Part shown: in pieces, positions 51,821-58,053 of the stretch | Layout: every line of letters starts with the position of its first letter | Position numbering within the stretch: the first letter of the stretch is position 1 | Sequence record: LC727697.1 | DNA length: 64,000 bases | Direction: 5' to 3' (one strand) | Notes under the pieces: model-generated | Database searches by the model: none | Told to the model about the DNA's origin: nothing | Seen by the model: only the letters and a program-made list of their open reading frames with translations | Made by a program: the position numbers and the translations under genes

Positions 51821-52010
51821 CTGCTTCACCTAAATGTGTTTTTGCTGCTATTTTAAGTTCTTTTTCAAACATTTGAATATCTACATCAAGCATTCCGTAT
51901 TCATCTAAAACTTCTATAAACGCATCCGCTGCATGAATGCGCTCAGATGACTTAATATATGGTCGCACGGCAGCCCAAATTTCATTTATTGCTTCAACAT
52001 CTGTAATCAT
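51810..52010 (-). CDS. Small acidic hypothetical protein
   Basis: 66-aa ORF, ATGA overlap. Confidence 0.7.
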   Translation of the reverse strand: MITDVEAINEIWAAVRPYIKSSERIHAADAFIEVLDEYGMLDVDIQMFEKELKIAAKTHLGEADDD

Positions 52011-53842
52011 TTATTAACCTTATATTGCAATTTTAAATGGCCAGCATCGTATACTCGATAAAATCCATTATTTTTCATATTCTCTTCTTCTGTTAATGAT
52101 TTATCGAAATCTGATAAAATGTTTTTCAACTTGTGTTTCATAAATTTTTGCCTATTAAGCCTTTTTGAAAAATCCTCTTTACTCACATAAGTGTAATTAA
52201 AATCAGTCTCATACAGTATATCAAACCCATTGTTTACATATACATTATTTGTCGGATTCGACCATCTGAGATCAGCATATGTGTTTATAACATCTATTTT
52301 GTTATTATTAATACAATATTTCAACAACTTAGAAAATCCGCCGATCACGTGCATAGAAGATGCATATCTAACTAGTTCTGTACATTTCTTCTTTTTAAGA
52401 AAAGACATAGCACAAACTAATTCATTATCATAATATAATCCATATGCATACGAGGATGCAGAATCTTCTTGTATGTGATATTTTTTAAAGAAATTTCGTT
52501 TGTCTGCTACCGATATTTCTTTAACTATACAATTCCTTGCATAACATTTATTATTAGATTTTCCTAAAATGTGCGCTAATTTTCTCTTTACTAGTTCTTT
52601 CTTATGAATAAATTCATCTTCAAAAATTTGTATTAAACGAATACCTTTTTGTTTACATATGCTATATTTTTCTCTATGCTTTGTTACATTTCCTTCTGTT
52701 CGTGTGCTATGAAAATATAATCCGTTGTATTCTATTCCTATGTTAAGTTCGGGAATAAAAATATCAATTTCTCGCGGAAATATAATAGTACGATCATTGT
52801 CGATTACATTAAATCCCAATGAACGCACATATTCAGATATTTCTGCATGACCAGAAGAAATATTTCCCTTTGTATATTTTATACCTTCTTCTATTAACTT
52901 TTCAGTAATAGATGTTATTTCGTATTTTTCACATAAAGCAGCTAATGTATAACCGTTGTCTATTAATTTAACAACTTCTTCTTTTATATCATTCCAAATC
53001 AAATCAATTTTTTTAATCGGTTCTCGTGTTTTCCATCCGTTATCTGCCATTATTTTCCATATGGTGTATTGACATACTCCCAATTTTTCTGCTATTTGGT
53101 ATGTAGTCATACATTCATCATAATACATCCGATAAATTTCTGATTCTTTACCACTTAATATAGAATGTTTCGGTTTTGTAAAATACTGTATATTGTATTC
53201 TTTTATAACGCTTTCTACATAAGTTCTAGAAATTCCGTATTCATTTATTATATCAACAATAGATTTAATTTTTAATTCTTCTGCTAGAGTTTCTCTAGAT
53301 ATTTTATCTTGTTGATGTTTTACAGCAGGTGGCAACGAATTAGTATAATCGATTTTTAAATGTGTTAAATGATGTTTTAGTTCTTCAAAATTAAAGTTAT
53401 AATTATTTTTTATCCAACTAATTGTTCGTCTTTCGTTATATACTAAGTGTTCGAAAAAGTCTTTAGTAAAATCTTCAGGCTTTTTTGTTTTACGCTTCTT
53501 GTTAGTAGCAGTATATAGACACTTTTCGATTGGTATTCCGTAATCATTAAACACTTGTTTTAAATGAAGTTCATTAATCTTATAAGTCTTTCTTATTTCA
53601 TTAAATGATTGTTTTTTAATTACATGTAAGTCAAATAACAACTCCTTTGAAACAAGTTTTTTAAATTTCAAAATTTTTATATCAGTTTCTTGCAACGGTA
53701 GACGATTCGTTTCATCTCTTATGATGGTTTTAATGACATCATAAGAGACTCCGTATATTTGCTTTAATTCAGATACAGATTTTAAATCATCGAAGTGTAA
53801 TTTGATAATATTAATACGATCTGTTTCGCATAATTTATTCAT
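52007..53842 (-). CDS. Hef-like free-standing homing endonuclease with N-terminal HTH repeats
   Basis: About 6 HTH-like repeats; EIDIFIPELNIGIEYNGLYFH; C-terminal YARNC...ELVRY...ADLRWS...VYDAG. Confidence 0.8.
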   Translation of the reverse strand: MNKLCETDRINIIKLHFDDLKSVSELKQIYGVSYDVIKTIIRDETNRLPLQETDIKILKFKKLVSKELLFDLHVIKKQSFNEIRKTYKINELHLKQVFNDYGIPIEKCLYTATNKKRKTKKPEDFTKDFFEHLVYNERRTISWIKNNYNFNFEELKHHLTHLKIDYTNSLPPAVKHQQDKISRETLAEELKIKSIVDIINEYGISRTYVESVIKEYNIQYFTKPKHSILSGKESEIYRMYYDECMTTYQIAEKLGVCQYTIWKIMADNGWKTREPIKKIDLIWNDIKEEVVKLIDNGYTLAALCEKYEITSITEKLIEEGIKYTKGNISSGHAEISEYVRSLGFNVIDNDRTIIFPREIDIFIPELNIGIEYNGLYFHSTRTEGNVTKHREKYSICKQKGIRLIQIFEDEFIHKKELVKRKLAHILGKSNNKCYARNCIVKEISVADKRNFFKKYHIQEDSASSYAYGLYYDNELVCAMSFLKKKKCTELVRYASSMHVIGGFSKLLKYCINNNKIDVINTYADLRWSNPTNNVYVNNGFDILYETDFNYTYVSKEDFSKRLNRQKFMKHKLKNILSDFDKSLTEEENMKNNGFYRVYDAGHLKLQYKVNK

Positions 53843-55106
53843 CGAACTCTTCTAAATGACCCTCTTCCACTTCTACGACATTGCCTAGGTCTTCGTCTGT
53901 AAATTCATTCATAATTACTTTTAGTTTATCGTAATCATTCCATTCTTTCCTATAATACAGCATTTCGGTACCATCTTTGGTTATGTACTTATATCTATTG
54001 CCTTGTTTTACAAGTTTACCTGTTTTTTCAAACAAGTCAAATAGACCCGATATTGGACTCATACCTGTATCATATGGAATATTTACTTTTACTGTCTCAA
54101 ACGGCTTTGCATATCGAGATTTCACAACTTTACATACTGCACGAATGCCAGCTACTTCAGAAATTTTATTACCTGCTTCGTCTTCTTTTAATTTTAACTT
54201 TTGCATTGCCACTACAATTGACGCCGCATAGACTGCGCCGCTGCCACCCGAAATTACAGCGTCAGGCTGAAATAAATCTTGAGATGCATATGTATGGTTA
54301 GTACAAACAAGGCCTATGTCTAAGTTGCCGAACATATTTGTACAGTTAGAAATCAATGCTTTTAATTGTTTTGCTTTCCTGCCCATATCTCCTTTCATAT
54401 CACCATTTTGAAATTGTGCAGTTTCCGTTGGTGTCAATAACATTCCGAGCGAGTCAATAACAAAAAGCACCTTTGGTCGATCATTGTTAGGTAGTTCGGC
54501 ATAATTAGTCTTGTAATCTTTAACAAAATCACTAATAATTTTTGCTACATCATCTATCATCGATACAGAGATGCGTAACATTTTTTCCGGTCCGGTGTCT
54601 ACACCTAGTGCATGTAGCCAAGATTCGTCGAGTGCATTTTCTGAATCAAGTAATACAACAAAAATTCCCTTTTCTTGTGCATCTTTTACAATGTTTCCTG
54701 ATACTATATACGATTTGCCACTATTGTGAGAAGAGAATCCATCACCATAGTAACGATGATTTTCGTGGAGTATTTCGAAATCGAAACATTCTTCGATGCC
54801 ACTTTCAGTTACAGAACTAATTGTTGAGACACCGTTTACAGTAAGCACTTGTTGGCCTTCGTACAAGTCTTTTGCAAGTGTCCAAAAAGTTTCCGATCCG
54901 TCTACCACTTCGATCATATGGTTTACTGCACATCTAGTAACTAACCCATCCTGCGTTTCTACCGTCACCATACTAAGAGGGCCTTTATCGAACCAAGATC
55001 CCAGTTTTTGCCAGCCATCTGGTGTGTCTAACTCAATTTCGTATTCATTACTACTGTAGAGAGACTTCAGTTCACTAACTGTTACTTCCTTTTCGATGTA
55101 TTCCAT
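53835..55106 (-). CDS. uvsX: C-intein (128 aa) fused to the UvsX/RecA C-terminal part
   Basis: Hint blocks (CAVNH, CFDF, SHN), then SGKS, DSENALD, IDSLG, KGDMG, TNH, KSRY. Confidence 0.93.
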   Translation of the reverse strand: MEYIEKEVTVSELKSLYSSNEYEIELDTPDGWQKLGSWFDKGPLSMVTVETQDGLVTRCAVNHMIEVVDGSETFWTLAKDLYEGQQVLTVNGVSTISSVTESGIEECFDFEILHENHRYYGDGFSSHNSGKSYIVSGNIVKDAQEKGIFVVLLDSENALDESWLHALGVDTGPEKMLRISVSMIDDVAKIISDFVKDYKTNYAELPNNDRPKVLFVIDSLGMLLTPTETAQFQNGDMKGDMGRKAKQLKALISNCTNMFGNLDIGLVCTNHTYASQDLFQPDAVISGGSGAVYAASIVVAMQKLKLKEDEAGNKISEVAGIRAVCKVVKSRYAKPFETVKVNIPYDTGMSPISGLFDLFEKTGKLVKQGNRYKYITKDGTEMLYYRKEWNDYDKLKVIMNEFTDEDLGNVVEVEEGHLEEFDE

Positions 55107-55109
55107 TTA

Positions 55110-56543
55110 TTAAAATTTCCTTTTATTATTTAAAATATTAACTAAATTTTTAATTGTTTCTTTCGGATTCTTCCTAAAGTCCTTTTCCCAAACTACTATA
55201 AAATCACTAACCAAATCAGATGATCTAATTAACGTTTCTCTGTAAATGTCCGATTCTCTTATTTCTTTAGCAGTTTTTCCATATATCAGTGTGTCATCAG
55301 TATATGTACTATCTGCATGCCAAAAGTTTCCATAAAATTCGATTACTGTTTTGCTTTTAGAATCATAGAAATCTACTATTTTCCCCATAACAGGGTATTC
55401 GTAGTTTAGTTCAGAAAAGTAAACTCCATCGGTATCGATATCCTCGGCAATTCCCCAAAATAGTTCTTGAGATACTTTAGAAGAATTATTTCGTTTCTTA
55501 AAAAAATCAACGCTTTGCTTAAATGCAATATCATAATCGCAATTTGTCCTTGCCATTATCCCTTCCGGGCTGTGAGTTTTTTTAAGGTTTATCAAAGATT
55601 TCTCCTCGTCTGTTTTAAGACTCATTGTAGTCATCCACGATTCTATTCTTCGATCACGCTCTTCTTGAGATACATTTTTCCAAGTATTCTGTATATTAGA
55701 TACTTTCCCTTTTGCCTCTTCTTCGCTATACCCGTTTTTAATCCAATATGCAACTGATCGAACAGAGTATTCGCTAGTGCCTTTTAGTTTTTTGGAAGAC
55801 ATGGCACTTGCTTTCTGTTGATGTTCGTTTATCTTCACTAATGCAGTATCTTCATCAAACCCCTTTGCCATCCAATATTGTATCGAAGTAGGCAAATAGT
55901 TTCTCTTTACCGCAGATACAGATGAATGTGTGCTTTTTCCGACAGATTTACCATACCGTAATACGCTAGCATATAAAGACGTACTAGATCCCAGTTTCAT
56001 CAGTCTTTTCATTCTTCCTGCATAATTAGTCAAATCTAACTTAATAAAAAACGAAATTGTCTTTTTATAAAACTCCAACCTTTCTGGTGTATACACACTA
56101 AGCAATAATGATAAACGTTTCTTTTGCTTATCAGTCATCTGGTTATAATACACACCATTATTGGAAAAGTCTTTATTACGTGTTATAAATGCCTCTTCCA
56201 CTGTCATTCCTTTACGGAATGCAGTTTTATATCTATTACTGATTAGTAAATTAACAGATTCGAGGAAGTCTTTTCCAAAAATATAAGAAATACTGTCTTG
56301 AGTTTTTGTACTAATACCATCTGTTCTGAGCTGATAGTATCTGTTATATGCATCATATAAGTCGGGAACTTTCACAGTTATCATAGTTAATATCATACGC
56401 TGAGATGCAGAATCCACTTTGCTCTTAGCAGAATCTTCTATCTTACGTATATCAGAAATGTACTTTTCTGATATCGTTACTATGTTTAACTCATTACATA
56501 GCTTCTTAAAGTTTTTTGTAGAAAGAACATTGTAATTTCCCAT
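55110..56543 (-). CDS. Free-standing Vsr-like/PD-(D/E)XK homing endonuclease
   Basis: Two YWxxxGxxEExA repeats; VDFYD...IEFYGNFWH...VVWE catalytic domain. Confidence 0.8.
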   Translation of the reverse strand: MGNYNVLSTKNFKKLCNELNIVTISEKYISDIRKIEDSAKSKVDSASQRMILTMITVKVPDLYDAYNRYYQLRTDGISTKTQDSISYIFGKDFLESVNLLISNRYKTAFRKGMTVEEAFITRNKDFSNNGVYYNQMTDKQKKRLSLLLSVYTPERLEFYKKTISFFIKLDLTNYAGRMKRLMKLGSSTSLYASVLRYGKSVGKSTHSSVSAVKRNYLPTSIQYWMAKGFDEDTALVKINEHQQKASAMSSKKLKGTSEYSVRSVAYWIKNGYSEEEAKGKVSNIQNTWKNVSQEERDRRIESWMTTMSLKTDEEKSLINLKKTHSPEGIMARTNCDYDIAFKQSVDFFKKRNNSSKVSQELFWGIAEDIDTDGVYFSELNYEYPVMGKIVDFYDSKSKTVIEFYGNFWHADSTYTDDTLIYGKTAKEIRESDIYRETLIRSSDLVSDFIVVWEKDFRKNPKETIKNLVNILNNKRKF

Positions 56544-56546
56544 AAA

Positions 56547-56586
56547 GTCTCCGTTTTAGATAAAAGTATTTATCCTCGACGGAGAC
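56547..56586 (-). promoter_or_regulatory. Late promoter inside an RBS-sequestering hairpin
   Basis: GTCTCCGT/ACGGAGAC outer stem, GATAAA/TTTATC inner stem, ATAAATA at 56573-56567. Confidence 0.8.
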
Positions 56587-56595
56587 ACTGGACAG

Positions 56596-56841
56596 TTAAG
56601 ATTGCTTCTTAGATAGTCTAATTTTCACTTTAGCAGTTTCAGGCAAACAACCCGACTCGCCAGCAAACATAGTTACTTTACCCATAGGTACGCCTTTATT
56701 AAAGTCGCTACTAATGAGATAATTAAGAGTATAGTTGCCGGTACTAATCCAAATAGTTGGGTCATTAAATCCTGTACTAATGCCAGTGATACTTTTAGTA
56801 ATATCTTTTCTAAATTTAGAAATATCGAATGGTTTTGTCAT
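56596..56841 (-). CDS. uvsX: UvsX/RecA N-terminal part fused to a 17-aa N-intein
   Basis: WISTGNYTLNYLISS...GKVTMFAGESG|CLPETAKVKIRLSKKQS-stop. Confidence 0.93.
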   Translation of the reverse strand: MTKPFDISKFRKDITKSITGISTGFNDPTIWISTGNYTLNYLISSDFNKGVPMGKVTMFAGESGCLPETAKVKIRLSKKQS

Positions 56842-56917: not shown

Positions 56918-56942
56918 GAGAGGGGATCAGCGATCCCCTCTC
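56918..56942 (-). terminator. Terminator after gp32
   Basis: GAGAGGGGATC / GATCCCCTCTC, then TTT. Confidence 0.8.
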
Positions 56943-56947
56943 CCTAT

Positions 56948-57934
56948 TTAGTTGCCGCTGTTTTGGCGGGCGCGGATGAGCGCAATTATATCTTGCGCAT
57001 TAGAAGCAGATTTGACAGGCTCTACAGGTTTAGTAGTATCTTCCCAAGGAAGATCATCGTTATCGTCTTCTATAACTGAAGAACTAGATACCGTAGTCTT
57101 AGGTTCTGGTTTAGATACAGGTACACTTACGGAAGTATTAGTAGGAACTTCAACCCCGTAAGGGCGATAGTATTTCCCCCAACGCTGCGGATCATATTCT
57201 TTACCTTCTACTGATTCTTCGAACATCTCGAATATAGCAGCTAATGCTTCTGCATCAGGTTTGGCAGGTAAAAATTTACTTAAATCATACAGACCATATG
57301 TTTGGATTGCTTGGAATTCTTCTTCAGTTAACGAAGATTCTTTCCTTGCCCATTTAGATGTAGCGTAATCGGCATATTGGCCCTTCATTAATTTAGTTAT
57401 CTGGAAATCAGTACCATTTAAATAATCAGTGGGAATGTTTTCCATTTCGGGGTCTAATAGAGACGATTTAACTAGATTAAAAATCTGACTTCCGAATGTG
57501 AATTTGCGAATAGGATTCTCCGGTAGTTCTTGTTCTACAAGGGGTGACTTACGAACAAGTCCTTGGAAAATATAAGAACGTTTCTTCCAATAAGTACGCG
57601 CTAATTTCTCTAACGAAGGATCTTTAAACCACGGACGGATTTCTTGATGAATAGGGCAAGATTCCCCCCACATTTCTACACACGGTACAGTAACAACTGT
57701 AGGTTTACTATTCATACCTACAATGCCACTGAATGGAATTTTAATTTGTTGTTTTTCTACCCAGAAAAAGGTATTATCAGTGTTTGCATCAGGAAGAAAT
57801 CTTACAGTAGCACTGTCGTTTTCATTCATGTCCCAGAATGGGAAATTACTTTTATCTGCACTGCCAGATGATTTTGTGCCACGTTTTGTTTCTTGATCTT
57901 TTAATTTTTGACGTAGTTCAGCAAGAGAAGCCAT
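56948..57934 (-). CDS. gp32: Single-stranded DNA-binding protein gp32-like
   Basis: VRFLP, CPI, YADYATSKW, acidic C-terminal region. Confidence 0.85.
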   Translation of the reverse strand: MASLAELRQKLKDQETKRGTKSSGSADKSNFPFWDMNENDSATVRFLPDANTDNTFFWVEKQQIKIPFSGIVGMNSKPTVVTVPCVEMWGESCPIHQEIRPWFKDPSLEKLARTYWKKRSYIFQGLVRKSPLVEQELPENPIRKFTFGSQIFNLVKSSLLDPEMENIPTDYLNGTDFQITKLMKGQYADYATSKWARKESSLTEEEFQAIQTYGLYDLSKFLPAKPDAEALAAIFEMFEESVEGKEYDPQRWGKYYRPYGVEVPTNTSVSVPVSKPEPKTTVSSSSVIEDDNDDLPWEDTTKPVEPVKSASNAQDIIALIRARQNSGN

Positions 57935-58024: not shown

Positions 58025-58053
58025 ATTATATAATGCAGTTATCTATTTGTCAA
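58025..58053 (-). promoter_or_regulatory. sigma70-type promoter of gp32
   Basis: TTGACA-N17-TATAAT. Confidence 0.85.

Follow-up and report, generated by a model that had tools for sequence, protein, structure and literature searches.

A putative ultra-short split intein and a free-standing Vsr-like endonuclease gene at the P-loop of a fractured phage uvsX

The window analysed here is a 64,000-nucleotide stretch of sequence record LC727697.1 and belongs to a PA5oct-like Pseudomonas aeruginosa jumbo phage of the genus Wroclawvirus. On its minus strand the recombinase gene uvsX lies in two pieces, a short N-gene (uvsX-N) and a long C-gene (uvsX-C), with a third open reading frame (ORF) between them. 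Each uvsX piece joins a portion of the recombinase (extein) to one part of a candidate intein, termed intein-N and intein-C. Along the minus strand, the features of the locus are the following (aa, amino acids).

56596-56841, minus strand: N-gene (uvsX-N), 81 aa, from the ORF and its translation
56650-56841, minus strand: uvsX N-extein, 64 codons ending in ...FAGESG, the first Walker A half, from the ORF list and translation
56596-56649, minus strand: intein-N, 17 codons (CLPETAKVKIRLSKKQS) and the stop codon, aligned with the inteins of Salicola phage SCTP-2 and VidaL
56539-56592, minus strand: predicted RNA hairpin, from the N-gene stop to the endonuclease start, from RNA folding
55110-56543, minus strand: predicted free-standing homing endonuclease gene, 477 aa, from the ORF and homology
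55113-55496, minus strand: Vsr-like (EDxHD-type) nuclease domain, endonuclease residues 350-477
53835-55106, minus strand: C-gene (uvsX-C), 423 aa, from the ORF and its translation
54723-55106, minus strand: intein-C, 128 codons, MEYIEKEVTV...GDGFSSHN, from the match to PDB 6vgv
53835-54722, minus strand: uvsX C-extein, 295 codons from SGKSYIVSG (the second Walker A half) and the stop codon

The N-gene product ends in ...VTMFAGESG followed by CLPETAKVKIRLSKKQS, that is, in a 64-aa extein and a 17-aa tail, and the C-gene product opens with 128 aa ending in ...GDGFSSHN, after which SGKSYIVSG begins. An earlier note on this DNA, made from the sequence alone, had placed the intein junctions between GESG and the 17-aa tail and between HN and SGKS; translation of the ORFs bears out both. 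The same note had pointed to opposite charges on the two halves, and these are indeed present: the tail has four lysines, one arginine and one glutamate (net +4), and intein-C has a net charge of -17, with -7 in its first 30 residues.

Together the two pieces account for a single UvsX. They cover positions 14-84 and 83-445 of the PHROG 97 'UvsX-like recombinase' profile (E = 3e-13 for the N-extein and 2e-46 for the C-extein) and align with residues 26-64 and 65-291 of the solved phage UvsX 9gbg, with no gap and no overlap. No part of the recombinase is absent or doubled. The C-extein also matches Pfam RecA (40.9 bits; cut-off 27). In the closest intein-less relative, the UvsX of Vibrio phage 2.275.O, which is 64.5% identical to the C-extein, the site is uninterrupted (...VFAGESGAGKSYIVSGN..., GESGAGKS, no insert). 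The Walker A motif, GxxxxGK[ST], is whole only once GESG and SGKS are joined, and the joined exteins are predicted to form a 359-aa UvsX with the Walker A sequence GESGSGKS.

Over the 5 kb tested, the window matches Pseudomonas phage sp. 30-2 at 100% identity and ten further records at 99.4% or more: PA5oct (two deposits), MIJ3, Callisto, PAC2, 30-3, Cassandra, Deifobo, Ettore and Paride. Those consulted in full are assigned to Wroclawvirus. Across ten phages the exteins vary at 31 sites, 11 in the N-extein and 20 in the C-extein, all of them synonymous. Such variation points to purifying selection, which is sensible only if the pieces make a working protein: both uvsX pieces are under strong purifying selection, and the protein is whole only when they are joined.

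These data bear on the possibility that the real gene holds a contiguous intein and that the split is due to faulty sequencing or assembly, or to recent breakage of a gene now in decay. A contiguous version does exist: Salicola phage SCTP-2 has one, as do 36 metagenome clusters. However, the identical three-gene layout recurs in 11 genome records, which represent ten distinct phages; a country of isolation is recorded for eight of those consulted, and the countries named are Switzerland, Thailand, Spain and Japan. The same layout is found in dozens of independent metagenome contigs, including loci L005-L009. The 1434-bp ORF between the halves is intact and has its own start, ribosome-binding site and hairpin, and the start of the C-gene product, M-x-Y-I-E-K-E-V-T-V, is common to many split relatives. 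Together with the exclusively synonymous polymorphism of the exteins, this makes error or decay, as far as sequence data can tell, next to inconceivable, and the misassembly that the earlier note had raised as a way for the intein to be contiguous finds no place in unrelated metagenome contigs with the same gene order.

Homology identifies the kind of intein involved. Intein-C matches PDB entries 6vgv and 6vgw, 'VidaL', with E = 1.1e-35, well beyond chance, and 52.5% identity. The crystallised VidaL chain, reached by querying PDB with a natural contiguous relative, reads ESG-(A)LPKEAVVQIRLTKKG-MIEEKKVTVQELRELY...GDGIVSH(A)-SGK and carries alanine at both catalytic ends; a 28-aa query made of the N-gene tail had no match in PDB. 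Aligned with the N-part of VidaL, intein-N is identical at 9 of 15 positions, residue 1 (alanine in the crystallised chain) being left out. In alignment, the break between the halves falls at the VidaL break (...LTKKG / MIEEKK...) and at the linker of Salicola's contiguous intein. The residues expected for catalysis are all present: Cys1 (Cys65 of the N-gene product, directly after GESG), block-B H63 (CAVNH), H127, N128 and S+1. H63, H127, N128 and S129 are each 100% conserved in 98 relatives, and Cys1 occurs in 56 of 56 split N-gene tails as well as in all contiguous relatives. Across 98 family members, 35 columns reach a conservation of at least 90%; intein-C keeps 34 of them, the exception being a change from Gln to Glu, and its relatives carry Pfam Intein_splicing and Hom_end_hint matches. 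By these alignments, the window's intein is a VidaL orthologue, a predicted S1-type atypically split class-1 intein, in agreement with the earlier note's view of a uvsX fractured by an atypically split intein with a Cys1/Ser+1 pair.

VidaL is named after Lake Vida metagenome data and was developed as an 'ultra-short split intein'. According to PMC13014065, it is a cysteine-dependent, atypically split intein whose break follows beta-strand 2 (the S1 site) and leaves an N-fragment of 16 aa; its splicing half-time is about 1 min at 37 °C, and it already serves in semisynthesis. Inteins that are atypically split in nature, with N-fragments of 15-37 aa, form a recognised class (PMC13014065). The window's intein shares with VidaL the UvsX P-loop site (ESG/.../SGK), the split loop after beta-strand 2, the Cys1/Ser+1 pair and a basic intein-N, of 17 aa here and 16 aa in VidaL, whereas about half of the sequence positions differ. 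In the intein tree VidaL groups with loci like L019, in which the halves are adjacent, no endonuclease gene is present and uvsX holds a second, canonical split intein. In contrast to these, the window's locus has an endonuclease gene and no second intein, and it lies in a cultured phage with a laboratory host. Other naturally split inteins also have a peptide-sized intein-N. The AceL TerL and GOS TerL inteins are also split near the N-terminus (intein-N of 25-37 aa) but reside in another host protein and are split after helix 1, one element later (the S2 site); PolB16 OarG, with an intein-N of 15 aa, differs in host protein and in its Ser1/Ser+1 nucleophiles.

It is conceivable that the intein halves no longer splice and serve as a non-covalent docking pair, such that UvsX is a two-chain complex. 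A precedent is the fragmented phage ribonucleotide reductase, which is split by an endonuclease gene and was shown to be held together by domains of a mobile element without splicing (PMC3045599). Opposite charges on the two halves would serve docking as well as splicing, and no PA5oct splice product has been reported. Docking alone, however, would not call for Cys1, H63, His127, Asn128 and Ser+1, residues that are needed for chemistry only and yet are kept here and are invariant or nearly so across 98 relatives. With a 145-residue insert left in place, the P-loop could probably not bind ATP, and the orthologue VidaL, as noted above, splices fast. We consider a permanent two-chain UvsX improbable and favor trans-splicing, as predicted from the conserved catalytic residues.

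The intein belongs to a sizeable family in which split and contiguous members share one insertion point. A search with intein-C returned 103 cluster representatives from metagenomes, approximately 60 of them split C-genes and 36 of them contiguous UvsX. The split C-genes, like the window's, begin a few residues upstream of (E)KEVTVxEL, and the contiguous representatives hold a mini-intein of 133-158 aa at the same insertion point. A search with the N-gene returned 56 metagenome clusters of 75-90-aa proteins that end in an intein tail of 15 aa (27 clusters), 16 aa (10), 17 aa (9), 18 aa (5), 19 aa (4) or 20 aa (1). These tails follow the consensus CLPxxAKVxIRxxxK, which the window's tail fits, and have a mean net charge of +3.7. 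The earlier note had called so short an N-intein in a recombinase rare; with a known orthologue that is used in semisynthesis and at least 56 metagenome clusters with tails of 15-20 aa, this description does not hold.

In Salicola phage SCTP-2, a related jumbo phage, the UvsX gene (gene 204) has a contiguous intein of the same family at the same insertion point (GDSG/CLPEDAIVNVRFCKKNLFVKNHAKQMTVKELKELY...SHN/SGKS), and the window's intein-N aligns with its first residues. The Salicola intein differs in occupying one continuous frame (about 145 aa), in which a 9-residue linker takes the place of the window's stop, endonuclease gene and start, and its host gene has a second intein, between ISGG and C. 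Gene 204 (L002:3743-5713) is labelled 'hypothetical protein' in its record; its product is a UvsX interrupted by two contiguous mini-inteins, the first in the P-loop and the second at ISGG/C...HN/SGQ.

A tree of the intein core, built from 113 columns, is poorly resolved, and only its well-supported branches were used. On these, split and contiguous forms are interleaved and at least three changes of state are forced, which suggests, as far as this tree can tell, that the intein was split and re-fused at one loop on several occasions. Three contiguous forms (P0056, P0011 and Salicola gene 204) have an in-frame methionine at the site where split C-genes start (...EKRNITMIEKEITVKEL, ...HAKQMTVKEL). 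It might mark re-fusion after loss of an endonuclease gene.

Other arrangements occur among the relatives. At L019:4732-8249 (JGI metagenome 3300007538), uvsX is in three pieces. The first ends in a 15-aa intein-N and is followed by a spacer of 29 nt, with no endonuclease gene, before the middle piece, which has the atypical intein-C at its start and a canonical intein-N of about 100 aa at its end (ISGG/C); downstream lie a 524-aa ORF (DUF7487) and a 181-aa piece with a short intein-C. Three metagenome proteins (P0099, P0101 and P0103) are pieces of DnaB/gp41-type helicases that start with a distant relative of intein-C, followed by SGSGKS or SGAGKS. At 36-38% identity to the window's intein-C (P0099 and P0101) and 31% (P0103), they indicate that the same intein lineage is also split in a helicase P-loop. 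In the metagenome contigs whose uvsX is split, the large terminase gene seems to be fractured as well (L005:1-1513 and L007-L009:1-2421), in the order Terminase_6N piece, ORF of about 300 aa and Terminase_6C piece with a faint intein match.

The arrangement of the three genes is that of the fractured genes described by Dassa et al. 2009 (PMC2677866), in which the halves of an essential DNA-metabolism gene stand in order on one strand, each with a split-intein part; the free-standing endonuclease gene that separates them is often Vsr-like and has a hairpin covering its ribosome-binding site. The host genes of that study are different (gp41, IMPDH, DnaE, NrdA, NrdJ, ligase and terminase), UvsX appearing only as a neighbouring gene. 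In addition, the endonuclease gene overlapped the downstream half by 6-69 bp at 15 of the loci of Dassa et al., whereas in the window the two are separated by a 3-nt spacer (TAA TAA ATG). Overlaps of 28 and 17 nt are present in the metagenome loci L005 and L007; overlap with the downstream half is a frequent feature of fractured genes and not a defining one.

A hairpin of -22.8 kcal/mol (z = -4.2 versus shuffles) is predicted for the 52 nt that separate the stop of the N-gene from the start of the endonuclease gene; it has an 8-bp stem, GUCUCCGU/ACGGAGAC (56579-56586 / 56547-56554), and carries AUAAAUA (56567-56573) in its loop. The GGAG ribosome-binding site (56549-56552) is buried in the 3' arm of this hairpin. 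Hairpins of other sequences stand at the same place in L005 and L007 (z = -4.8 and -6.7), with UAUAAAUA, which contributes a full TATAAATA, and AUAAAUA, respectively, in their loops. The hairpin is thus kept in structure, not in sequence, across the three loci. Dassa et al. found a hairpin over the ribosome-binding site in 15 of 16 fractured-gene endonucleases, tied it to translational repression and noted that such hairpins often hold TATAAATA (PMC2677866). The start region of the C-gene is unstructured, with AAGGA upstream, inside the end of the endonuclease gene.

The product of the middle gene has 1143 relatives among cluster representatives and gave no match in Pfam, PHROG, NCBIfam or PDB sequence searches. 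Its first 350 residues are all-helical, and the last 160 match the 'putative VSR endonuclease' of Aeromonas phages Aes508 and Aes123 (E = 2e-8 by tblastn, 4e-15 by pairwise blastp). In Aes508 this ORF separates the N-intein half of a split DNA polymerase from its C-intein half. Across 50 aligned homologues, D391, E402, G405, H409 and D432 are invariant. The Vsr-like/EDxHD signature consists of an Asp, a His and an Asp (D51, H69 and D97 of Vsr) and an invariant Glu at the position of Vsr F62 (PMC3239194; PMC2677866), and D391, E402, H409 and D432 occupy these positions, including that of the extra Glu. A profile alignment sets VDFYD...VIEFYGxxWH...D..R...IVWE against PDFV...VIFTHGCFWH...ERDRR...IVWE of E. 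coli Vsr, with a non-significant E of 0.2. Pfam MTES_1575 is found in 8 of the 50 homologues and DUF559 in 3.

A fold search with a model of the whole 477-aa protein was swamped by helical proteins, and the domain was modelled alone instead. The AlphaFold model of residues 350-477 has a pLDDT of 96.5, and its best nuclease match is Vsr 1cw0 (TM 0.64/0.54, probability 0.87, E = 0.28); 1vsr scores a TM of 0.50. Since homology and the motif carry the assignment, and the fold test is consistent with it though not decisive, the middle gene is in our reading a Vsr-like homing endonuclease gene of predicted activity. The earlier note had likewise proposed a Vsr-like endonuclease gene in the fractured-gene layout. 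The endonucleases between the uvsX halves of two unrelated metagenome loci are homologous to it (E = 1e-73 and 1e-80).

Two characterized systems resemble this gene from different sides. In Aes123 and Aes508, a cultured phage likewise has a fractured replication gene with a homologous intervening gene (29% identity over residues 310-468), but the host is polB and the intein has a canonical split site, a long intein-N and no use of cysteine (PMC13014065). I-Bth0305I, the EDxHD prototype, likewise has a C-terminal Vsr-like domain with the conserved Asp, His and Asp and the invariant Glu, an N-terminal region presumed to bind DNA and a recA-family gene as its target, but it is encoded by a group I intron and has only 266 aa (PMC3239194).

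Variation among the Wroclawvirus genomes sets the intein and endonuclease apart from their surroundings. Across ten genomes, the regions flanking the cassette (intein-N, hairpin, endonuclease gene and intein-C; 1927 bp) vary as follows.

gp32: 27 variable sites per kb
uvsX N-extein: 57 variable sites per kb
uvsX C-extein: 22.5 variable sites per kb
Hef-like gene: 19.7 variable sites per kb

The cassette itself shows two singleton differences, against 47 expected from the flanks (Poisson P = 3e-18), and each of the two alters an amino acid of the endonuclease. Beyond the intein junctions, the first polymorphic sites come at distances of 13 bp and 105 bp. When 50 kb were aligned for five genomes (31.9 variable columns per kb), windows of 1927 bp contained a median of 41 variable sites (5th percentile, 20), and those with at most one variable site are found only over the cassette. 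The two longest invariant runs of this alignment, 1022 and 1021 bp, also fall within the cassette, the next longest being 705 bp. A near-invariant cassette between variable flanks is most simply explained if the cassette copies share a far younger ancestor than the flanks do. These observations suggest that the cassette spread recently as one unit, as expected for endonuclease-driven homing. We considered whether genus-specific DNA that cannot receive imported variation could be the sole cause of the low diversity, and rejected this because no other stretch of the 50 kb behaves in the same way.

Based on the gene structure and the homologies described above, we propose that uvsX is very probably fractured by a class-1 intein in its P-loop (GESG/SGKS) that was split in a loop by a free-standing Vsr-like endonuclease gene, with trans-splicing predicted to restore the protein. 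The 81-aa N-precursor and the 423-aa C-precursor would be translated separately, and neither fragment alone would have a complete ATP site. The basic intein-N (+4) would dock on the acidic intein-C (-17) and complete the Hint fold. Formation of a thioester at Cys1 should then be followed by transfer of the N-extein to Ser+1, cyclisation of Asn128 and an O-to-N shift. The expected product is the 359-aa UvsX with GESGSGKS as its Walker A motif, and the predicted junction peptide is VTMFAGESGSGK. The endonuclease would serve only the spread of the element, and the hairpin over its ribosome-binding site would keep its translation low. Cleavage of cassette-free uvsX alleles by the endonuclease, with the whole cassette copied in during repair, may have taken place recently among related phages.

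Several observations weigh against parts of this proposal. In the accessible part of the PA5oct proteomics only the C-gene product is listed as detected, and a junction peptide is not reported there. Because identity to VidaL is only about 52%, VidaL activity is not simply transferable to the window's intein. The Vsr fold match is non-significant (Foldseek E of 0.19-0.28, profile E of 0.2), and the solved EDxHD member 3r3p was not among the sequence or fold matches. The element AUAAAUA in the hairpin loop is 7/8 of a T4-type late promoter, and a late transcription start inside the loop is a possibility, only that; the published PA5oct promoters are sigma-70-like, which makes the idea of a promoter in the hairpin weak here. 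Finally, all known Wroclawvirus genomes carry the cassette with no empty-site allele known in the genus, and the low diversity of the cassette could stem from another cause, such as one recent recombinational replacement.

The last of these points can be developed into an explanation in which splitting and splicing are real but the endonuclease is inactive, so that the low diversity of the cassette reflects a single chance replacement or an import of variation into the flanks only. With the cassette in all sampled genomes, nothing would be left to home into, and two differences, both amino-acid changes in the endonuclease, are what drift after fixation should produce. At least one metagenome locus, L019, retains a split intein whose halves are only 29 nt apart and lack an intervening endonuclease gene, which indicates that the endonuclease is dispensable. 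Against an inactive endonuclease stand its intact catalytic motif and full-length ORF. The invariant block, moreover, reaches no more than 13 bp and 105 bp past the intein junctions and closely matches a mobile unit, no other 1.9-kb stretch in 50 kb is comparable, including other genes that lack relatives outside the genus, and the neighbouring Hef-like endonuclease gene has ordinary diversity. We hold an inactive endonuclease to be a possibility of limited weight.

The counterpart, in which intein and endonuclease still form one mobile unit, is one that we put forward tentatively and with some doubt. The endonuclease would cut cassette-free uvsX near the Walker A codons, and the 1.9-kb cassette would be copied with flanking conversion tracts of 13 and 105 bp. 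The highly conserved Walker A codons are only 51 nt from the endonuclease gene, and a short intein-N may be favored because the endonuclease gene then stays beside its target.

As a type, the locus is already known, being by homology a VidaL orthologue in the fractured-gene layout of Dassa et al. with a Vsr-like endonuclease gene. What is new is its presence in cultured phages that infect PAO1, the near-invariant cassette and the suggested picture of repeated changes between split and contiguous forms. The PA5oct and MIJ3 genome papers contain no mention of a uvsX intein; the MIJ3 paper describes only a split PolB intein, which was not found in the window. Ultra-short split inteins of the VidaL-like kind come from metagenome data and have offered nothing that can be tested in vivo. 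PA5oct, MIJ3, Paride and the related phages grow on PAO1 and carry such an intein in an essential recombinase, and should make it possible to ask whether trans-splicing sets a limit on recombinase activity or its timing, what the endonuclease targets and whether the cassette homes as a unit. For protein engineering, the window provides a further natural variant, and dozens of others with an intein-N of 15-20 aa are candidates for screens of speed or extein tolerance. In several database records the pieces bear the label 'hypothetical protein' or 'structural protein', annotation that can now be corrected.

Two neighbouring genes complete the region.

56948-57934, minus strand: single-stranded DNA-binding protein (SSB), gp32 type
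52007-53842, minus strand: Hef-like homing endonuclease, 611 aa

The Hef-like endonuclease matches PHROG 3339 (E = 4e-95), and the start of its gene overlaps the end of uvsX-C by 8 nt. The protein has several helix-turn-helix modules and a D-x10-E-x6-H motif (IDIFIPELNIGIEYNGLYFH) with the spacing of the intein-borne endonuclease, and pairwise comparison of the two endonucleases gave no significant similarity. Its diversity is ordinary and includes amino-acid changes, unlike that of the cassette. In intein-less relatives, a uvsY-like gene directly follows uvsX. The PA5oct records MK797984.1 and NC_071039.1 attach the flag 'structural protein, ESI-MS/MS' (virion preparations) to the C-gene product and to the SSB, and leave the 81-aa product unflagged. 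A perfect sigma-70 promoter (TTGACA-17-TATAAT, 12/12) lies at 58025-58053 on the minus strand, upstream of the SSB gene, and an 11-bp GC-rich hairpin at 56918-56942 separates that gene from uvsX-N.

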